IMG/VR virus record: IMGVR_UViG_3300011934_000017
Coordinates: 156,238 to 220,237 of that record
Length of the DNA stretch: 64,000 nt
Reading direction: 5' to 3' (one strand)
The position numbers and the translations under genes are program-made. Below the pieces are notes generated by a model that had not been told where the DNA came from, did no database searches, and saw only the letters and a program-made list of their open reading frames with translations. This document shows, piece after piece, positions 8,120 to 15,529 of the stretch. Position 1 is the first letter of the stretch, and the number at the start of each line of letters is the position of its first letter.

Positions 8120-8135
8120 ACCTACCGAAACCTCT

Positions 8136-8163
8136 AAAAAGGGCGGCAAATGCTGCCTTTTTT
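8136..8163 (+). terminator. Rho-independent terminator
   Basis: AAGGGCGGCA-AA-TGCTGCCTTT stem followed by T run. Confidence 0.8.
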
Positions 8164-9130
8164 CGTGTCTGAAGCGTGACGCTGAAACATCAAATGTAAC
8201 AGAGTGTTAACCATGCAAAAGCACTCTACAGGGCTGTTTGAAAGCATTGGGGGCGTCATCCATGCAAAACCAATGCTTTTGCATGTCTGTAAGCAAAATA
8301 CCTTGTTACAATTCGTTACAAAAAAGTTTTGTGTGGAAGAAATGCGTTTTTAGACCGTTTGGAGCCTCTGTCCTGTTAAAAAACGTCAAAATATCAACCT
8401 TGTTTTTTAGACGCCTTAAAATCAGGCTAAAAATCACTCATTTTTAACGATTTCCTCAAAACCAAAAAGTGTCAATACGCAGTATTGGCGCAGATTGCGT
8501 TGAGCAGCAAAGCGTGAAGAGCTAAGCGAGGCGCAGCCGAGCATTAGCGATGATGCTTGAGTAATGCCTCAGCAAACAAGAGACGCTAGGCGGCGCGAAC
8601 ACTTAGAGCCCGTCTCGTCCAGAAGCGTTGAGCGCAGCGAATAAGCGAAGGGGTTCCAAGCGAAGCGTTAAGCGTTCCAAGCGCTGCGAGGCAGCGCGAT
8701 AGCAACGAGCGTAGCGAGTTGCTTAAAAGAACCTATCCTACGCGATCCTACGACTGATTCATTTAAAGAACGTTAAGCAATTAAAAATTGCATTCTTTTG
8801 GATCATGTTAAAACAGGCCGAACTCTGTCTTTGCTAAGACCATAGCAGACCTTAAAACAAGGTGAATTAATAGGACGTGTGGAATTAAATGAGCCAGTCG
8901 TAGGACTGCGTAGTGTTGTATAATGTTAAAGGTCCAACTCGCTACGCTCGTCGTCCCTAACGCTGCTTCGCAGCGTTTCTCTAATCCTTTCCGCTTCGCG
9001 GTACCGCGGGCTAACGCCCGCTCTCGCTCACTTCGTTCGCTCACCTTAAAAAACCTAATTTGTCAGTTCAAAAATCAAAGTCTTTTCAAGACAAACTTTT
9101 TAAATGAAAAACTTTTGTTGCGCGCTTTAA
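8164..9130. other. Non-coding dyad-symmetric region; candidate replication origin
   Basis: Largest gene-free gap; 17-bp perfect IR 8705-8721/8935-8951, nested 15/17 IR 8738-8754/8897-8913, AT-rich core, strand-specific hairpins, flanking A/T tracts. Confidence 0.55.
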
Positions 9131-9131
9131 G

Positions 9132-9139
9132 TGTAAATA
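9132..9139 (+). promoter_or_regulatory. TGTAAATA promoter motif upstream of the modification operon
   Basis: Exact motif copy ending 34 nt before ATG 9173. Confidence 0.65.
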
Positions 9140-9172
9140 TTGAACAGATTATATGGAAAACCGGAGATTACG

Positions 9173-10648
9173 ATGGGAAAACAGTTACCCGAAGAGCTAA
9201 GGTATCAGCTTCTTGTTTTCGACTATAAGAAAGCTAACAAGGCACGCAAGCTCTGGAAAAAACGTAAAGGAGATAAGGATAAAGAAGCCCATAAAAAGTT
9301 TTGCTATGGATTAGGAGCAAAGCTAGACGTTTCTCCGAAAGTAGTTAGCTTCATCGTCAAAAACAATAAATGGGCAGATCAAAAGCCCGCAGAGCATGTA
9401 AAATCATTACCAACAGGCCTTCAAGAATACGATAAACCTTCTTTGAAGCCTGAAGCCTTAGTCAGAGGAAGAGAATTATACATATCTCCTAAAAACTGGC
9501 GCAGGCTCAACGAGCATTACACCAAAGGAAAAATAAAGAAAGCTATTGTTCGCGCTGTTAGAAAGCTAGATTTACCTGCACCTGTTCAACCTATAAGCCA
9601 AGAGCAAGCAGATGATAGCTTTCGAGCACTGAAAAAGTTGCGTTCTGACAGCATGATAAAACGTATGCCTACCTGCACACGGTGGGATTATAAATACGGT
9701 ATTTCCGACGTTGTTATTGACGCACCTCGAACAGGAAACGAATGCTCAAACTTTTATCATCAGGAGTCACGTTGGTGGTGCGACTATCAGAGTATTCCGT
9801 CACCGATGAAAGTATGGAATTCTGATCTTCACATGTATTCCATGATGAATGCTTTATGGACGTTGAAGTTTAAGAAGATTACAGGACCAGAGCTTCGCAC
9901 AGCTATAAGTGTCCGTAAATATGTGGCTAGTCAGTTTAAACCTTCTGCCGCCAAAGCGTTTTACGAGCTATTTGACTGCAAGCACGTTTACGATCCTTCC
10001 AGTGGCTGGGGAGACCGTCTAGCAGGCTTCATGGCAGCTAAATGCACCAAGTCCTATTGCTCTACGGATCCCAACAGCAGACTGTACGACGACTATGAAT
10101 TGCAGAAAAATCGGTACGGTGGAAAGAAAGAAATAAACATGTACTGTCACGGTAGTGAAATCAAAGGTGGTGTTCGCAAGATGTACGGACACAGAGTTGA
10201 TACTGTCTTTACTTCGCCTCCTTATTTCAATGCCGAACGCTACAGCGAAGACGAAGGCCAAAGCTTTAGGCAGTTTGATGAAATAAGTGCGTGGCGTGAA
10301 AATTTCCTGTTTCCTTCTTTGAAAAATGCGTGGAATGCTTTGACTTCAGAAGGTGAACGCGGTGGCATTCTAGCAATCAATATTTCGGACATATACAACT
10401 CTTCGGATAAAACTCGCGGTGAGATATGCGACCCTATGAACGATTACATATCTTCGCTGAAAGGTGCTCGATACATCGGTTGTATTGGTTTGCGTCTAGC
10501 TAAACGTCCTGAGAGCGGTGCACTTGAAGGTAAACAAGGTGCAAGTATCGAACCTATCTGGGTCTGGGCTAAAGGTGGCTCTTGGGAGCTAGACGATTAT
10601 ATAGATAACGGATTTAAGACTAAGAAAGTAAAAGGTCTTTGGGGATAA
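9173..10648 (+). CDS. SAM-dependent amino (N4-C/N6-A type) DNA methyltransferase
   Basis: Motif I YDPSSGWGDR and motif IV FTSPPYF; long basic N-terminal extension; GGAG RBS before ATG 9173. Confidence 0.85.
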   Translation: MGKQLPEELRYQLLVFDYKKANKARKLWKKRKGDKDKEAHKKFCYGLGAKLDVSPKVVSFIVKNNKWADQKPAEHVKSLPTGLQEYDKPSLKPEALVRGRELYISPKNWRRLNEHYTKGKIKKAIVRAVRKLDLPAPVQPISQEQADDSFRALKKLRSDSMIKRMPTCTRWDYKYGISDVVIDAPRTGNECSNFYHQESRWWCDYQSIPSPMKVWNSDLHMYSMMNALWTLKFKKITGPELRTAISVRKYVASQFKPSAAKAFYELFDCKHVYDPSSGWGDRLAGFMAAKCTKSYCSTDPNSRLYDDYELQKNRYGGKKEINMYCHGSEIKGGVRKMYGHRVDTVFTSPPYFNAERYSEDEGQSFRQFDEISAWRENFLFPSLKNAWNALTSEGERGGILAINISDIYNSSDKTRGEICDPMNDYISSLKGARYIGCIGLRLAKRPESGALEGKQGASIEPIWVWAKGGSWELDDYIDNGFKTKKVKGLWG

Positions 10649-10649
10649 T

Positions 10650-11360
10650 ATGGCACATATCATTGAAGCAAACAGTATCGACAGTCTTTGGTATCGTACT
10701 ATGAATACCTTACTGACTGAAGGCGATAAGATTAGCGGTATTCAAGAAATTCCTAATCTGATCTTGGTTCTTAAAAAGAATTTTCGATCCTCTGAGTTTT
10801 TCGATAAAGAGTTTCGTCGTATTTTTGGAGACGAACGAATAGACTTTGCATCTTCTGTAACGTTTGTTCCTCCGAAAGAAGGCATGGTAAGTCCTTCATA
10901 CGAACAGAATGAGCCCAAAGCTAAGTGGACGAAAACTTACTGGGGTCGTATGATCAGTTTTGACGGAAGTGTTAATCAGATTGAGGAAGCAATCAAAAAG
11001 CTTTCTAAAGGTAAGAATACCAAGATGATTTCTATAGGTATTTATGCGCCTTCTTCCGATCATCGCAAAGTCATGGGTGGTGTGCCTTGTATGACTGCTA
11101 TCGATATAAAGCCTAGAAATGGAAAGATTGATCTATCTGTTTTCATGAGGTCTATGCGATTCTCTAAGTCGGGTTATGGAGACGTTCATGCCTTGTGTGA
11201 ACTAGGTAAATATATCTGTGAGCGCTCTAACATGGAAATGAACAGCCTCACCATGTTTGCGACCTCTGGACACACTTTTTACTCTGGTGAAGAGTTTACA
11301 AACTGTAAAGCTCTTATGGAATCAATGAAAGAACGCAAAGCAGAGAAGGTAAGAATATGA
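10650..11360 (+). CDS. Atypical thymidylate-synthase-fold protein (dCMP-hydroxymethylase-like Asp)
   Basis: YWGR...NQ, PC147, RS167-168, D178 at the E. coli N177 position, H208; R170 replaces the conserved D169. Confidence 0.8.
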   Translation: MAHIIEANSIDSLWYRTMNTLLTEGDKISGIQEIPNLILVLKKNFRSSEFFDKEFRRIFGDERIDFASSVTFVPPKEGMVSPSYEQNEPKAKWTKTYWGRMISFDGSVNQIEEAIKKLSKGKNTKMISIGIYAPSSDHRKVMGGVPCMTAIDIKPRNGKIDLSVFMRSMRFSKSGYGDVHALCELGKYICERSNMEMNSLTMFATSGHTFYSGEEFTNCKALMESMKERKAEKVRI

Positions 11361-12172
11361 AGCTCAGCCTTAATAATCCAGTTGAAACCCATCGTATTGG
11401 CAAATACGAAGTCTTTGTCAAGCGTGATGATATGATGGGTGATAATAAAATTCTTCCACCTTGGGGAAAGATGGACGCCATTGATAGTATTCTTCAAAGA
11501 ATGGATCTTAGCGTACCTCTTATACAACTGAATGTCTTTGGTTCTTGGAGTGGTTGGGCACTCGCACGTCTCGCTAAAAAGTATGATTGCGAAGTACATG
11601 TGGTTCATCCTAAGACGAAGAAAATCACTGACGACTATATAGGTGTGATGGAAGAAGCAGGTGCTATCATTCATCCTATTCGACATAATATGATGCGCGT
11701 TTTGTACGCTCAGACGAACAACAGGGCGAAAGAAGAAGGTATGAGAATGCTGCCGTATGCATTCAACACACCGAAATATCTAAACGCTATGGCAAGACGT
11801 TTACGCGCTACTTTAGAAGAGCTGGGTCCCATAGATAACTTGGTGGTAAGCTCTGGTAGTGGTGTGACTGTTACGGGACTGTCTAAACCTTTTCTTGATC
11901 TAAATCCTAAAGGTCAAGTCTACACTGTTTGCGTTTCGTCCGAAAATTCGATTCGTAAAACGTTTAACAGTCGTGAAGTCAGCACTGATCCTGTTCACAT
12001 TATCAAGTCACCGTATGAGTTTGGTGATACGATGCCTAAAGTTGAAGTTCCTTTCTCTTGTAATCAGTTTTGGGATAAGAAAGCTTGGCATTGGTTGACG
12101 GAGAACAAGAGCATTCTTAAAGGTAAGCGTACACTGTTCTGGAATCTAGGTGGTGAGTATACATTTTTGTGA
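11357..12172 (+). CDS. PLP-dependent fold-type II enzyme (ACC deaminase/D-cysteine desulfhydrase-like)
   Basis: VKRDD, PPWGK (putative PLP Lys), SSGSGVT phosphate loop, LFWNLGG; ATGA overlap with the upstream gene. Confidence 0.85.
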   Translation: MKLSLNNPVETHRIGKYEVFVKRDDMMGDNKILPPWGKMDAIDSILQRMDLSVPLIQLNVFGSWSGWALARLAKKYDCEVHVVHPKTKKITDDYIGVMEEAGAIIHPIRHNMMRVLYAQTNNRAKEEGMRMLPYAFNTPKYLNAMARRLRATLEELGPIDNLVVSSGSGVTVTGLSKPFLDLNPKGQVYTVCVSSENSIRKTFNSREVSTDPVHIIKSPYEFGDTMPKVEVPFSCNQFWDKKAWHWLTENKSILKGKRTLFWNLGGEYTFL

Positions 12173-12183
12173 GGATTGAATAA

Positions 12184-13026
12184 ATGGGCAAGCCGAAAGT
12201 TAAAGAATGTTTGATACGTAACCTGGAAAGATATGACGGACCTTTTGCTGTTCTTCTGTCGGGTGGTGCAGACAGTCACGCTAATCTTTTCGCATTACTT
12301 GAGATGGGCGCAGACGTACACGTATATAGCTGCACCTTAGAAGACAGGGAAAGCAGGGATTTTATTTGTGCTCGCAGGACTGCTGAAATCTTTGATCTAC
12401 CTTTCACACCTGTTATTTTACCTACAGACCTCGACCAGCTCCTTGTAGATATTCGAGAGAACATGAGTCTTATCGGAACAAAAGGCAAGGTAGAGGTAGA
12501 AGCTTTATGGGCGTTTCGTAAAGCCGTTGATATTATAACAGAACCTAGTATCGTCAGCGGTCTGTCAGCAGGTATGTATTTTTGTTTGACCAAGAAAGGC
12601 AGCATACACTACGCACATACAGGAAGAATCGACGAATATCGTAGAGAGACATTTAAAAGAGCCTCTAATCCTAATAATCAAGGGGCCAAGATGAAACGAT
12701 ATTCGAAAAGCGTTGGAAAGAAGTGGATAAATCCTTGGATAACCCGAGGAATGCTAAAGACGTTCTTAGGAACTACATGGGAAGATGTAAATAAACCACG
12801 ACAAAAAGAAGCGATCCGCGCAGACTTTGAAAAATACTTTGCAAAAACCAAAGTGTTTAATCAACGAGACATGCACAAAGGTGATAGCGGTATGTCTGAG
12901 CTATTCGCTAAATTGTTGGAAGACCCTAAGGTAAATGTTAGGAATCATAAATCTGTTGTTGGTATCTACAATATGATACGAGCAGAAGAGCTGGCCAGAG
13001 TAAATAAAGGCCCTGGCTTGTTCTAG
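12184..13026 (+). CDS. Asparagine-synthetase-like PP-loop amide ligase without glutaminase domain
   Basis: LLSGGADS PP-loop, IVSGLSAGMYF, INPW, KEAIR, KGDSG; 280 aa with no N-terminal Ntn domain. Confidence 0.75.
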   Translation: MGKPKVKECLIRNLERYDGPFAVLLSGGADSHANLFALLEMGADVHVYSCTLEDRESRDFICARRTAEIFDLPFTPVILPTDLDQLLVDIRENMSLIGTKGKVEVEALWAFRKAVDIITEPSIVSGLSAGMYFCLTKKGSIHYAHTGRIDEYRRETFKRASNPNNQGAKMKRYSKSVGKKWINPWITRGMLKTFLGTTWEDVNKPRQKEAIRADFEKYFAKTKVFNQRDMHKGDSGMSELFAKLLEDPKVNVRNHKSVVGIYNMIRAEELARVNKGPGLF

Positions 13027-13038
13027 TCGGAGAATGCA

Positions 13039-13701
13039 ATGCTTACTTTCCAACATTTAGATAAACTCACCATAAACGAATTTTTTGAAAGCGACTTGTT
13101 TTTTGAGTTGCACTCTCTGTCTGGTATGAGCATATTTAGCGGTAGTACGGAAACAGTAAAAGAGAAATTGCTAGATTCTGTACACAACCAACAAGAAAAG
13201 GTTTCACACAACCTCGTATGTTCGAATGGAAAACCTGTTGGTTTCTTTTCTTTGAAGACGCACAGTACCTACTTTTACTACGACACCTTTACAGATACAG
13301 TAGAAGACTTAGGTAATGCGGTAGAGTTTTCTAGTTGGTTTGTTTCTAGTAGCTATAAAAATCTAGTTTCTCCTACCGCCGCTATAATGAGAAAAAGCTT
13401 AGAAATGGCAAGTGACATTGGACGCATTGCTGTGTTTGGTGTGCGAGCACAGTATTACGAAGACGGTACTCCAATGTTTCTTTCTGCGAATAGAGATTGT
13501 TGGAGTCACGAACCGCGACCAGACTACAATATATCTAATGGGCCTAAAAACTTGTCTGTGACGCATCCTTCTTTTCATCCTGATTCTTTTGGTATTTTAA
13601 AAGCTGCTCACCTGTTTGGCTTTAATATGTTTGGTTTAGATGCTTACGACGGGAGTCCTAAATATCGCAAGTTTCTTTCTTCAATGAAATCTGTTGAATG
13701 A
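13039..13701 (+). CDS. Putative GNAT-fold acyltransferase
   Basis: LVCSNGKPVGFFSL strands, EFSSWFVSSSYKN motif-A-like segment, AIMRKSLEMA helix; GGAGA RBS. Confidence 0.5.
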   Translation: MLTFQHLDKLTINEFFESDLFFELHSLSGMSIFSGSTETVKEKLLDSVHNQQEKVSHNLVCSNGKPVGFFSLKTHSTYFYYDTFTDTVEDLGNAVEFSSWFVSSSYKNLVSPTAAIMRKSLEMASDIGRIAVFGVRAQYYEDGTPMFLSANRDCWSHEPRPDYNISNGPKNLSVTHPSFHPDSFGILKAAHLFGFNMFGLDAYDGSPKYRKFLSSMKSVE

Positions 13702-13745
13702 GATTCTGCAATATCCACTATGTAATGGTTTGATGAGGATAAATA

Positions 13746-14726
13746 ATGTCGATTACCGTAGAAAAAGACGATTATATAATCGTTCGTTACCGCAACAAGT
13801 CCGTTCTTTGTTTTGTGTTGAATGGAAAAAGCTGTAGAGGCGTTATAGAAAAAACGCTTCATACCGATGATCCTGAGAATATCACTTACGAAAGTGAAAA
13901 CGTTCTCTGTAATCTGGGTCCCAACCCACAAAATGGCAAAATCTACGGCATTGATGTTACACCGTATCGAAGCACCATAGATACAAAGACGTTTGGCCCC
14001 ATTCATCTATTCCGTGACGTTCCTAAAAAGGAGCTTAAAGCGCTTCGTTCTGCAATGAAGACGGTGCACAAGAAATTTGAGAAAGAGGCGAGCACTGCCT
14101 TTCTACCTTTGTATCAAATGCACATTCTACCGAAGAAGGGCAAGTATGCAGGGTCATATCTAGCCAAGTCTAAAGGCAGTGAAGTATGGGACCAGATTAA
14201 ACTGCATCCCGACACATTCGTTGATCCTATCTATAACGAATACCTGATTGCCCACGAGTTTGCACACGGCCTCTGGTACCGCTGTGTGCCTATGGATATC
14301 CGAGCTAAGTGGATCAATCTATATCAAAAGCGTCGTAAGCTAAACTCTATTAATCAAAAGCATCTGGACGAGCTTTACCAAGAGCTTATGCGTTATGAAG
14401 GTGGTATTCGTGATTACATCAAAGAAGTAGCCGACGATGAAGAAAAACTGGTAATCAAGGAAGTGTTGAACTACTTCAAGCGTTACCAGAGTATGTCTTC
14501 AGATGATGTGGAGCTCTTGTTGTTACATGATAGTGGCAAGCTTGCTGATATGTGGCCGAGCCGTGCTCTACTATCAGAGACCAGTCCCGACATTTCCACC
14601 TATTCTATGGTCAAGGTAGAAGAATTTTTTGCAGAGGCTGTGGCTTATCATTTTACAGGAAGAACGTTACCTAAAGATGTTCAGAAAGGCATTTCTATCA
14701 CCTTCAAAAAGTGCAAACAAGCTTAA
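13746..14726 (+). CDS. Zincin-like metallopeptidase domain protein
   Basis: IAHEFAHGLW (HExxH) and distal EEFFAEAVA. Confidence 0.65.
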   Translation: MSITVEKDDYIIVRYRNKSVLCFVLNGKSCRGVIEKTLHTDDPENITYESENVLCNLGPNPQNGKIYGIDVTPYRSTIDTKTFGPIHLFRDVPKKELKALRSAMKTVHKKFEKEASTAFLPLYQMHILPKKGKYAGSYLAKSKGSEVWDQIKLHPDTFVDPIYNEYLIAHEFAHGLWYRCVPMDIRAKWINLYQKRRKLNSINQKHLDELYQELMRYEGGIRDYIKEVADDEEKLVIKEVLNYFKRYQSMSSDDVELLLLHDSGKLADMWPSRALLSETSPDISTYSMVKVEEFFAEAVAYHFTGRTLPKDVQKGISITFKKCKQA

Positions 14727-14733
14727 TTCTAGC

Positions 14734-14760
14734 AGGGAAGCTTTTTAGCTTCCCTTTTTT
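14734..14760 (+). terminator. Rho-independent terminator closing the 9173-14726 operon
   Basis: AGGGAAGCT-TTTT-AGCTTCCCT-TTTTT. Confidence 0.85.
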
Positions 14761-14815
14761 AGGTTCAAATAGTGTAAATATTACTCAATATAACGCTATA
14801 CTTAAGGCAATACTC

Positions 14816-15529
14816 ATGAACCTAACTAAAATCATGGAAAACAATTCAAGGCTGTTCTCTCACGTTATAATCCCTAGACGAAGCGCTCCTACAAAAATTC
14901 GTCCCATTTTACCTCTCAAGATTAAGTTTCTAACAAAACCTAATTCTAAGCAAATCCTTTATTCTGGTTTGTACTTTTGCATTCCAGATAATCTTCTGTT
15001 TTACGAAATGGACTTACTAGAAAAGGCAATTATAAGCAGGTTGCCTGACATTTCTCAACCTTTGAACATACCGTATAGTCTGGTTACGAAACTAGATCCG
15101 TCATTTTATGGATACATAAATGGATTTCACGTCGAAGACAATAAGGCTTATATAGAATCTGCGAATTGTCTTTTTGTTAATCCTGACTCACCTTTATTAC
15201 CTACGTCGCTCGAAGACCCTGCTTATGGTGTACTGCTTCCCCTTTATGAGGCGTCTGCTTGCTTATCTTATCTGTTAGCTTCCATATCCCTATATAGAGC
15301 TGGTGACTTTGATACTCTACCTACGATGCTAGAGAAGACTTGGAGTAAAGTAGAAAAAGCTTCAGGTGTAAATATGACTAAAGCATCTTTCATCGACGGT
15401 ATGTTTAGAATCGGTCCTGACTTATTTGGTAACTCTATAGAAGATGATTGTGTGGCTCCCGGACTTGCGCATCTTCTAGGTAGCTTTTTGTCTTTAGATA
15501 CTGACGTGTCGAAACATTTGGAGTGGTAA
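14816..15529 (+). CDS. Hypothetical protein
   Basis: ATG 14816 downstream of TGTAAATA (14773-14780). Confidence 0.7.
   Translation: MNLTKIMENNSRLFSHVIIPRRSAPTKIRPILPLKIKFLTKPNSKQILYSGLYFCIPDNLLFYEMDLLEKAIISRLPDISQPLNIPYSLVTKLDPSFYGYINGFHVEDNKAYIESANCLFVNPDSPLLPTSLEDPAYGVLLPLYEASACLSYLLASISLYRAGDFDTLPTMLEKTWSKVEKASGVNMTKASFIDGMFRIGPDLFGNSIEDDCVAPGLAHLLGSFLSLDTDVSKHLEW

Follow-up and report, generated by a model that had tools for sequence, protein, structure and literature searches.

A phage PLP enzyme of the M6 gp52 family in a conserved gene cassette, probably for DNA hypermodification

Introduction

What does a vitamin-B6 enzyme do in a large phage, and does it serve host metabolism or the making of modified DNA? 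The question is raised by an ORF at 11357-12172 (+) in a window of 64,000 nucleotides, positions 156,238 to 220,237 of the IMG/VR record IMGVR_UViG_3300011934_000017, from an uncultured 220-kb stromatolite phage. From the sequence alone, the initial annotation took it for an ACC-deaminase/D-cysteine-desulfhydrase-like PLP enzyme translationally coupled to a TS-fold gene. It inferred that the enzyme generates or transfers an amino-acid-derived moiety for a base modification by aminoacrylate chemistry, rather than being a metabolic auxiliary gene.

We followed this up with profile, fold and gene-context analyses. What was described of the ORF proved correct in every detail, whereas the interpretation was only partly supported. 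The role in base modification and the fold gained support, but the family label beyond the fold, the proposed chemistry and the special partnership with the TS-fold protein did not.

Results

The ORF and its motifs

The ORF encodes 271 aa, with VKRDD at residues 21-25, PPWGK at 34-38, SSGSGVT at 165-171 and LFWNLGG at 260-266. Its ATG at 11357-11359 overlaps the TGA stop of the TS-fold gene at 11358-11360, making the ATGA at 11357..11360 (+), and an AGAAGG Shine-Dalgarno-like run lies 8-14 nt upstream. The ORF is not a chance one. Pfam PALP scores 42.7 bits against a cut-off of 35 (5.8e-11), and there are 257 database relatives, at least 120 of them at 41-100% identity, and at least 142 IMG/VR loci. 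The AlphaFold2 model has a mean pLDDT of 92.4 and a pTM of 0.90.

The predicted PLP Schiff-base lysine is K38, with its codon at 11468..11470 (+), and is invariant in 22 and in 37 aligned sequences. The predicted PLP phosphate-binding loop S165-T171 at 11849..11869 (+) aligns with the A-A-G-S-G-G-T loop of the ACC-deaminase homologue 1j0a and is conserved across the family. The loop G62-S-W-S-G-W67 at 11540..11557 (+) is in place of the Ser-Asn-His substrate/cofactor loop of ACC deaminase homologues. The profile alignment puts S63-W64-S65 opposite the S-N-H of 1j0a, so the earlier remark that SNH is replaced by SWSG holds. Trp64 is nearly invariant in the family.

A fold-type II enzyme outside the ACC deaminase family

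The protein is a fold-type II (tryptophan-synthase-beta-like) PLP enzyme, with Foldseek TM of about 0.7 to TdcB, 1j0a and DcyD, and 0.69-0.75 to 1j0a, 4d8t and 1tzk. However, the ACC deaminase/D-cysteine desulfhydrase model TIGR01275 gives only 15.9 bits against a cut-off of 289.4 (E 0.0062), with no significant stretch. The resemblance is therefore at the level of fold only.

Neither ACC ring opening nor D-cysteine desulfhydrase activity was assayed here. The fold does match these enzymes, and public records name the relatives 'threonine dehydratase' or 'cysteine synthase'. Yet the protein is far below every curated family cut-off, the Ser-Asn-His loop is lost, the listed relatives with named sources come from phages or metagenomic contigs, and the linkage to DNA-modification-type genes is conserved. 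An auxiliary metabolic gene acting on host metabolites as an ACC deaminase, D-cysteine desulfhydrase or threonine dehydratase is thus very unlikely.

Homology to M6 gp52

The closest characterised relative is gp52 of Pseudomonas phage M6 (YP_001294560), shown in vitro to decarboxylate C-alpha-glycinylthymidine in DNA (PMC8989533). The ORF matches PHROG 7093 at 3.3e-25 over residues 6-265, and M6 gp52 hits the same PHROG at 2e-159. The profile of 37 relatives matches gp52 at full length by hhalign (99.8%, E 5.6e-29, 260 columns). K38 aligns with K36 of gp52, the lysine that Lee et al. proposed for the internal aldimine (PMC8989533).

A C-terminal signature at 12050..12151 (+) is shared with gp52, namely P-F-x-C-N-x-F-W-D, K-A-W-x-W-L and F-W-N-(L/I)-G. 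The columns P232, F233, C235, N236, D240, K242, W244, W246, F261, W262, N263 and G265 are invariant in the alignment that includes M6 and MP1412 gp52. However, the identity to gp52 is only about 25% and gp52 has H-S-K-A-G-W at the replaced loop, so the reaction may have changed; decarboxylation by the present enzyme was not measured. This homology nonetheless disfavours the aminoacrylate beta-elimination or beta-replacement of the initial annotation, as the only characterised relative is a decarboxylase.

A nucleotide search of the cassette against cultured phages found nothing, and the protein search found only M6-like and Bordetella phages at 26% identity or less, so no cultured carrier is known. 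A BFVD search gave one unnamed 810-aa viral protein as the best hit, which was uninformative. Isoelectric points gave no hint of DNA binding. A larger representative search was not made because the family was already clear.

The conserved cassette

Across 83 metagenomic loci the PLP gene travels with three partners. The partners were counted in 39 loci with at least 5 kb on each side. The first, at 9140..10648 (+), is an SPPY amino-methyltransferase-fold protein of 502 aa, present in 38 of the 39. All 19 family members hit PF01555 weakly, and the motifs D-x-S-x-G-W-G-x-R and S-P-P-Y-F are invariant. The family profile against PDB sequences gave only a marginal hit, 2zie at E 0.18, whereas fold searches show a generic class I MTase fold with the exocyclic-amine methyltransferases TrmN, aTrm11 and METTL5 on top (VIA Z 15-16). 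Its C-terminal half is about 30% identical to phage DNA methylases. It could also be an ordinary DNA methylase merely clustered with the other genes. The PaBG and Erwinia phage methyltransferases next to the ligase are not its homologues but are CmoA-like.

The second partner, at 12184..13026 (+), is a CmoY-type PP-loop ATP-dependent amide ligase of 280 aa, present in 36 of the 39 loci. It matches Pfam Asn_synthase at 3.2e-5 and is 27% identical to Synechococcus phage S-B43 CmoY (SpCmoY; E 5.6e-22) and 39% to PaBG gp306 (E 1e-46). SpCmoY was shown to act on a carboxylate of a DNA base (PMC12783734). The ligase here lacks a glutaminase domain, but most loci carry a roughly 500-aa fusion with an M-C-G amino-terminal glutaminase.

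The third is either a divergent TS-fold protein, in 26 of the 39 loci, or a D-2-hydroxyacid dehydrogenase, following the PLP gene in the other 13. The pattern G-S-W-(S/T)-G-W of the PLP enzyme is conserved in both types. The present TS-fold protein, at 10650..11360 (+), has 236 aa and matches TIGR03283 at 2.6e-21, below its cut-off, Pfam TS at 0.001 and PHROG 5131 at 2.3e-9. Its catalytic Cys147, R167-S168 and H208 align with ThyA and T4 gp42. At the residue setting uracil or cytosine specificity (ThyA N177, T4 gp42 D179), MAFFT puts the invariant D178, but hhalign shifts the loop by three residues, and the two alignments leave the base specificity unsettled. A loss of its phosphate-binding arginines was considered but is not claimed, since it rests on the same weak alignment.

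The translational coupling to the TS-fold gene is particular to this genome. In the 83 loci, the gene just upstream of the PLP gene is the ligase in 49, with overlap, the MTase-like gene in 12 and the TS-like gene only here. Moreover, one complete genome carries the PLP gene with identical active-site motifs and has no TS-like gene at all. A special partnership with the TS-fold protein is therefore not conserved; we do not claim that the two proteins bind each other, and no complex was modelled.

Other neighbours are suggestive. A pyridoxamine-phosphate oxidase (PNPOx) gene lies beside the PLP gene in one related locus, and an HD-domain gene (weak Pfam match, E 0.0078) lies downstream in 23 loci. 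A terminator-like hairpin at 14734..14755 (+), a nine-pair stem followed by a T-run, may tentatively end the operon starting at about 9140. No comparably strong site lies on the + strand between 9140 and 14726, and one weaker hit at 12502-12524 is inside the ligase gene.

Absence of the known installing enzymes

The gp52-type context was not found. In this 100% complete genome, the Pfam models PF18748 and PF18724 are absent, and M6 gp51 (ADDT, the amino-acid:DNA transferase) and gp54 (5-hmdU DNA kinase, HMUDK) find nothing. The TS-like neighbour is a short TS type different from a dUMP hydroxymethylase. The genome also keeps a canonical thymidylate synthase and a dCMP deaminase, so a 5-hmdU-based thymidine pathway is unlikely.

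By single-sequence tblastn, the genome gave no hit to M6 gp53 (the radical-SAM isomerase) and gp55, ViI gp226/243/247, T4 beta-glucosyltransferase and gp42, PaBG gp305/307/308, the HD protein, PNPOx or an Asp/Arg-hydroxylase-like neighbour from related loci, while the positive control worked. MazG is absent. CmoA (carboxy-SAM synthase) and CmoX (C5-cytosine carboxymethyltransferase) were found neither in this genome, nor in four other genomes carrying the cassette (three complete TS-type and one complete dehydrogenase-type), nor in any of the 83 loci. No modified base has been measured, and reads were not examined for signs of modification, as public runs hold the phage only as contigs from stromatolite metagenomes. 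The cassette itself occurs in at least 142 IMG/VR loci, including complete genomes of 134-289 kb.

Discussion

Our preferred reading is that the gene encodes a gp52-family, fold-type II PLP enzyme serving as a tailoring step in a phage DNA-base hypermodification pathway. An alpha-amino-acid-type side chain on a nucleobase would displace K38 from PLP to form an external aldimine, and one bond at the alpha-carbon would then be broken. By homology this is most probably the C-COOH bond, leaving a primary amine on the base. Participation in nucleobase modification at all is quite likely, but the specific reading of a decarboxylase on a base is held only tentatively. The fold, the family membership, the conserved lysine and motifs, the cassette conservation and the absence of the known installing enzymes come directly from the analysis, whereas DNA as the substrate, the decarboxylation and the origin of the side chain are our inferences.

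The pathway around it is not the M6 or ViI one, and its constant partners are two, the SPPY enzyme and the CmoY-type ligase. In this view, the SPPY enzyme would put a SAM-derived group on an exocyclic nitrogen of a DNA base, and the CmoY-type ligase would turn a base-borne carboxylate into an amide. A 3-amino-3-carboxypropyl (acp) group is the only group transferable from unmodified SAM that would give substrates to both other enzymes. The TS-fold protein in this genome, or the dehydrogenase in other lineages, would be an accessory. However, a decarboxylase and a carboxylate-amidating ligase would compete for the single carboxylate of an acp group, so the tight ligase-PLP coupling is not explained by simple decarboxylation.

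A carboxylate would be left for the tightly coupled ligase if the PLP enzyme installs the amino-acid moiety, as initially proposed. It would make an aminoacrylate from serine, O-acetylserine or O-phosphoserine for attack by an exocyclic nitrogen or a TS-fold-activated C5 of the base, and the ligase would amidate the carboxylate of the resulting 2-amino-2-carboxyethyl group. Beta-replacement is the commonest chemistry of fold-type II enzymes, cysteine synthases are among the PDB sequence matches, the genome lacks ADDT, HMUDK, CmoA and CmoX, and the gene is coupled to the TS-fold gene in this window. Yet the loop Asn that binds the substrate carboxylate and the PLP O3' in beta-replacement enzymes is replaced by Trp, the TS-like gene is absent from a complete genome with identical PLP motifs, and the almost invariant MTase-like partner is given no role. 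With the characterised relative being a decarboxylase, this route is unlikely.

The dehydrogenase raises another possibility, as it fits a 2-oxo-acid product better than an amine. The PLP enzyme would remove the alpha-amino group by deamination or transamination, and in some lineages the dehydrogenase would reduce the 2-oxo-acid side chain before the ligase amidates the retained carboxylate. The dehydrogenase gene overlaps or abuts the PLP gene in 22 loci and is present in all 13 well-flanked loci that lack the TS-like gene, and the nearest folds, ACC deaminases, D-cysteine desulfhydrases and threonine dehydratases, all release 2-oxo acids. However, fold-type II deaminases need a beta or gamma leaving group and none is obvious, four complete genomes of the TS type including this one have no such dehydrogenase, and homology points to decarboxylation. 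This also appears unlikely.

Action on a free nucleotide or a small molecule rather than on DNA is not excluded. The enzyme may decarboxylate SAM so that the MTase-fold protein transfers an aminopropyl group, or make the amine that the ligase couples to DNA. Aminopropyl transferases share the class I MTase fold, with BpsA among the fold matches at Z 13.6, and the present ligase, without a glutaminase domain, needs an external amine. Most cassettes, however, carry a glutaminase-fused ligase with the catalytic Cys, which supplies its own ammonia, and still keep the PLP gene, and gp52 acts on DNA. A small-molecule role is thus improbable.

A bolder version of the acp scheme is unlikely but not excluded. 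The MTase-fold enzyme would transfer the acp group of SAM to N4 of cytosine or N6 of adenine in DNA, and the PLP enzyme and the ligase would convert it into aminopropyl and/or amide derivatives. This would be the first amino-acid-derived N-linked DNA base modification, made without any of the known installing enzymes, in a pathway widespread in uncultured large phages.

Phage DNA hypermodifications defeat restriction enzymes and probably other nucleic-acid-targeting defences, and their enzymes have become tools for labelling and sequencing DNA. Amino-acid-type additions are so far known from two routes, thymidine via 5-hmdU kinase and ADDT, and cytosine via carboxy-SAM. This cassette, of a make-up not described in the papers found, joins one tailoring enzyme from each route, adds an SPPY MTase-fold protein and a short TS-fold protein or a 2-hydroxyacid dehydrogenase seen in neither, and lacks both known installing steps. 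Its product would probably add a new modified base and a new way of attaching it.

Comparison with known systems

M6 gp52 is of the same length class (278 against 271 aa), is also phage-encoded and shares the lysine position and the C-terminal signature, but differs in its loop (S-K-A-G-W against S-W-S-G-W here) and in its genomic partners. Salmonella phage ViI gp226, the PLP decarboxylase of O-serinylthymidine, is likewise a fold-type II enzyme acting on an amino acid attached to a DNA base (PMC8989533). It shows only a weak, N-terminal, generic PALP similarity (hhalign 13%), is 424 aa long and belongs to a different subfamily.

With the ACC deaminase homologue PH0054 (PDB 1j0a) and Salmonella D-cysteine desulfhydrase (4d8t), our protein shares the fold, gives the best PDB sequence match (E 0.0016) and shares the K-R-D-D motif, the lysine and the glycine loop. 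It is about 15-18% identical and about 50 residues shorter, with the Ser-Asn-His loop replaced.

In microcin C synthesis, MccD, an MTase-fold acp transferase, and the MccE N-terminal domain, a PLP decarboxylase, together add an aminopropyl group. An MTase-fold enzyme is thus paired with a PLP enzyme acting on a nucleotide-linked group, which would explain the near-invariant pairing of the MTase-like and PLP genes. This is an analogy of logic only, as no sequence comparison was made and the MccE decarboxylase domain belongs to another PLP fold.

The S-B43 CmoA/CmoX/CmoY system makes 5-carboxymethylcytosine and its glycine amide (PMC12783734) and has no PLP enzyme, TS-fold protein or SPPY MTase-fold protein. 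The present cassette has the CmoY homologue next to the PLP gene but no CmoA or CmoX. In the related jumbo phage PaBG, a CmoA/CmoX/CmoY set occupies the same place upstream of the peptidase, clamp-loader and SbcC genes. The logic of a carboxyl handle followed by an amide is probably retained.

Genomic setting

The 220,237-bp viral record, whose last 64 kb were analysed here, has direct terminal repeats and is rated 100% complete. Its DNA is found only in stromatolite metagenome runs, as contigs. The gene content and order resemble those of Pseudomonas phage PaBG and the Erwinia jumbo phages, with primase, clamp loader, SbcCD and a peptidase-like gene.

The ORF at 11357-12172 (+) encodes 271 residues. 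The motifs VKRDD, PPWGK, SSGSGVT and LFWNLGG, singled out in the initial annotation, are all present at residues 21-25, 34-38, 165-171 and 260-266, respectively. Its start ATG (11357-11359) overlaps the TGA (11358-11360) of the upstream TS-fold gene, and the next gene starts 11 nt after its stop. The Pfam PALP score is above the gathering score, a word-index search gave 257 relatives and IMG/VR gave 142 confirmed loci. An AlphaFold2 model built on 37 relatives has a mean pLDDT of 92.4. The observation in the initial annotation thus holds, and the gene is real and conserved.

Just upstream of the cassette, in the ORF-free gap 8120-9139, nested inverted repeats (a 17-nt perfect pair and a 29-nt pair at 86%) form a hairpin of roughly 245 nt at 8705-8951 (+). 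Its RNA fold has an MFE of -92.3 kcal/mol and z = -7.1, with 0 of 200 shuffles folding as well. A search of Rfam gave no match. It could be a regulatory RNA, a replication or packaging signal, or a mobile-element scar.

Downstream at 13039-14755, the ligase gene is followed without a strong terminator by genes for a 220-aa protein with no family match and a 326-aa peptidase-like protein of the PaBG gp304 type (PHROG 17197, 1e-95). A strong terminator-like hairpin lies at 14734-14755, so they may be co-transcribed with the cassette. The GTG-started ORF 14711-15529 overlaps that hairpin, and its start is doubtful.

Fold and family of the PLP enzyme

A Foldseek search of the PDB with the predicted structure returns only fold-type II enzymes at TM of about 0.7, namely biodegradative threonine deaminase, CJ0600, the ACC-deaminase homologue 1j0a, D-cysteine desulfhydrase and serine racemase. 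The best PDB sequence match of the family profile is 1j0a at E 0.0016, and that alignment places S63-W64-S65 opposite the Ser-Asn-His loop. No curated cellular family claims the protein, and the D-cysteine desulfhydrase subfamily model gives 15.9 bits against a cut-off of 289. The ACC-deaminase label in the initial annotation therefore describes the fold, not the family.

The nearest characterised relative is gp52 of Pseudomonas phage M6. PHROG 7093 matches our protein over the whole length at 3.3e-25, and M6 gp52 belongs to the same PHROG at 2e-159. The profile of 37 relatives aligns with gp52 at 99.8% probability and E 5.6e-29 over 260 columns. In a joint alignment, K38 falls on gp52 K36, and a long C-terminal signature is invariant in both groups.

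The conserved cassette

We fetched 83 loci that carry a relative of the PLP gene and clustered all their ORFs. Among the 39 loci with at least 5 kb on each side, 38 have a homologue of the 502-aa protein encoded at 9140-10648, 36 have an asparagine-synthase-like gene and 26 have the TS-fold gene, while every other gene cluster occurs in 18 loci or fewer.

The 13 loci without the TS-fold gene all have a D-isomer 2-hydroxyacid dehydrogenase of 270-290 aa next to the PLP gene (Pfam 2-Hacid_dh). This short dehydrogenase, whose substrate is unknown, replaces the TS-fold gene in a third of the cassettes, lying directly beside the PLP gene in the loci L009, L015, L028, L029, L055, L062, L084 and others. 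The two accessories exclude each other in the complete genomes tested, as four TS-type genomes lack the dehydrogenase and one complete dehydrogenase-type genome lacks the TS-fold gene. The PLP active-site motifs are the same in both types.

The gene immediately upstream of the PLP gene, usually overlapping it, is the ligase in 49 loci, the MTase-like gene in 12, the dehydrogenase in 7 and the TS-fold gene only in this window. One relative has a pyridoxamine-phosphate oxidase gene right after the PLP gene, and an HD-domain gene follows it in 23 loci. An Asp/Arg beta-hydroxylase-like (cupin) gene recurs near the dehydrogenase-type cassettes in 9 loci, at 9266-10432 in L028 and also in L055, L062 and L085, and may be a further tailoring enzyme.

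Partner proteins

The 502-aa protein has invariant D-x-S-x-G-W-G-x-R and S-P-P-Y-F motifs. Every one of 19 members hits the N6/N4 DNA methylase Pfam family weakly, and its C-terminal half is about 30% identical to phage DNA methylases, one of them annotated N4-cytosine. Its AlphaFold2 model (pLDDT 77) is closest to the exocyclic-amine methyltransferases TrmN, aTrm11, Trm14 and METTL5 at Z 15-16, within a broad field of class I methyltransferases. The first 100 or so residues of this TTG-started ORF (9140-9440) have low model confidence and no counterpart in most relatives, which are 410-440 aa long, and the true start may lie downstream. Many cassettes have a second or third paralogue of the MTase-like gene (about 545 aa), preceded by a conserved 237-aa protein with no Pfam match, as at 11490-13844 of locus L006 and its equivalents in L010, L011, L046 and L061. 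This may reflect several target motifs.

The asparagine-synthase-like protein in this window has 280 aa, a PP-loop S-G-G-x-D-S and no glutaminase domain. It is 27% identical to the "putative asparagine synthase" of Synechococcus phage S-B43 and 39% identical to PaBG gp306. In most cassettes, however, the ligase is a roughly 500-aa form with an amino-terminal M-C-G glutaminase start, and it scores as glutamine-hydrolysing asparagine synthase. This corresponds to the second ligase cluster that is predicted to use ammonia (PMC12783734).

The TS-fold protein matches the short methanogen-type thymidylate synthase model at 2.6e-21, below its cut-off, and keeps the catalytic Cys, Arg-Ser and His. As to uracil or cytosine as its base, two alignment methods place the specificity residue differently, and we assign neither. 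Separately, the phage has its own canonical thymidylate synthase outside the window at G000:C1:95233-96351 of its genome (1498-2637 in the stretch L089), with the catalytic Cys, the folate-binding Asp and the uracil-specifying Asn in place. This enzyme is 379 aa long and has two large insertions relative to E. coli ThyA, one of about 30 aa and one of about 55 aa, but keeps all the catalytic motifs checked. The genome also has a dCMP deaminase.

Proposed mechanism

The constant core is the MTase-fold protein, the PLP enzyme and the ligase. The ligase family needs a carboxylate on a base, the PLP family needs a free alpha-amino group next to a carboxylate, and the MTase fold transfers groups from SAM to an amino nitrogen. 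The only group transferable from unmodified SAM that offers both features is 3-amino-3-carboxypropyl. We therefore propose that the MTase-like enzyme installs such a group on an exocyclic nitrogen of a DNA base, and that the PLP enzyme binds its alpha-amine through exchange with K38 and, by homology with gp52, removes CO2. The pair MccD and MccE in microcin C synthesis is a precedent for this logic, although no comparison with them was made here.

The weak point is that a decarboxylase and an amidating ligase would then compete for one carboxylate. In addition, a 2-hydroxyacid dehydrogenase next to the PLP gene would suit a 2-oxo-acid product better. Three readings are therefore still allowed, that the enzyme installs the amino-acid moiety by beta-replacement, that it deaminates the side chain, or that it prepares a small-molecule donor. 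An ordinary metabolic role is unlikely.

Overall, it is likely that the enzyme serves nucleobase modification, but that it is specifically a decarboxylase acting on a base-borne amino acid is only a tentative reading, somewhat less likely than not. The interpretation in the initial annotation, that of an ACC-deaminase-like enzyme generating or transferring an amino-acid-derived moiety for a base modification, is thus partly supported. While the gene and its conservation are direct findings, the substrate, the product and even the target base are inferences drawn without any experiment, sequencing reads or structure of a gp52-type enzyme. The protein is a new, divergent branch of a known phage enzyme family, placed in a cassette whose composition is not described in the papers we could find and whose pathway product is unknown. 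No cultured phage in the collection searched carries it.

Relation to known systems

M6 gp52 was purified by Lee et al., who saw the 410-425 nm PLP absorbance, proposed K36 as the aldimine lysine and showed that gp52 decarboxylates C-alpha-glycinylthymidine in DNA to 5-(2-aminoethyl)uridine (PMC8989533). ViI gp226, the other characterised decarboxylase of this kind, is only remotely similar to our protein (13%).

The context is not the M6 pathway. The M6 cluster has the amino-acid:DNA transferase gp51, the radical-SAM isomerase gp53, the kinase gp54/gp55 and the dUMP hydroxymethylase gp58. In this complete genome, neither the Pfam models ADDT and HMUDK nor the M6 proteins find anything. The absences reported here rest on profile and tblastn searches of genomes rated complete by CheckV. 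With the phage's own canonical thymidylate synthase and dCMP deaminase, a thymidine hypermodification built on 5-hmdU is therefore unlikely.

The S-B43 homologue of the ligase is CmoY, an ATP-dependent ligase that joins glycine to 5-carboxymethylcytosine in DNA, and the handle is made by CmoA (carboxy-SAM synthase) and CmoX (PMC12783734). That study mentions no PLP enzyme or thymidylate synthase. Neither CmoA nor CmoX is present in this genome, in four other genomes carrying the cassette (three complete TS-type and one complete dehydrogenase-type) or in any of the 83 loci.

In PaBG (locus L007, 1784-5747), gp310, gp309, gp308 and gp306 are ParB, CmoX, CmoA and CmoY homologues (E 1e-58, 1e-31 and 2e-35 to the S-B43 proteins), although the record names them cytosine methylase, tRNA methyltransferase and asparagine synthase. 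Together with Erwinia phage pEa_SNUABM_5 (locus L008, 4156-5849), these cultured jumbo phages probably carry 5-carboxymethylcytosine amides. PaBG thus has homologues of all three Cmo genes, plus ParB, at the place where this phage has its cassette.
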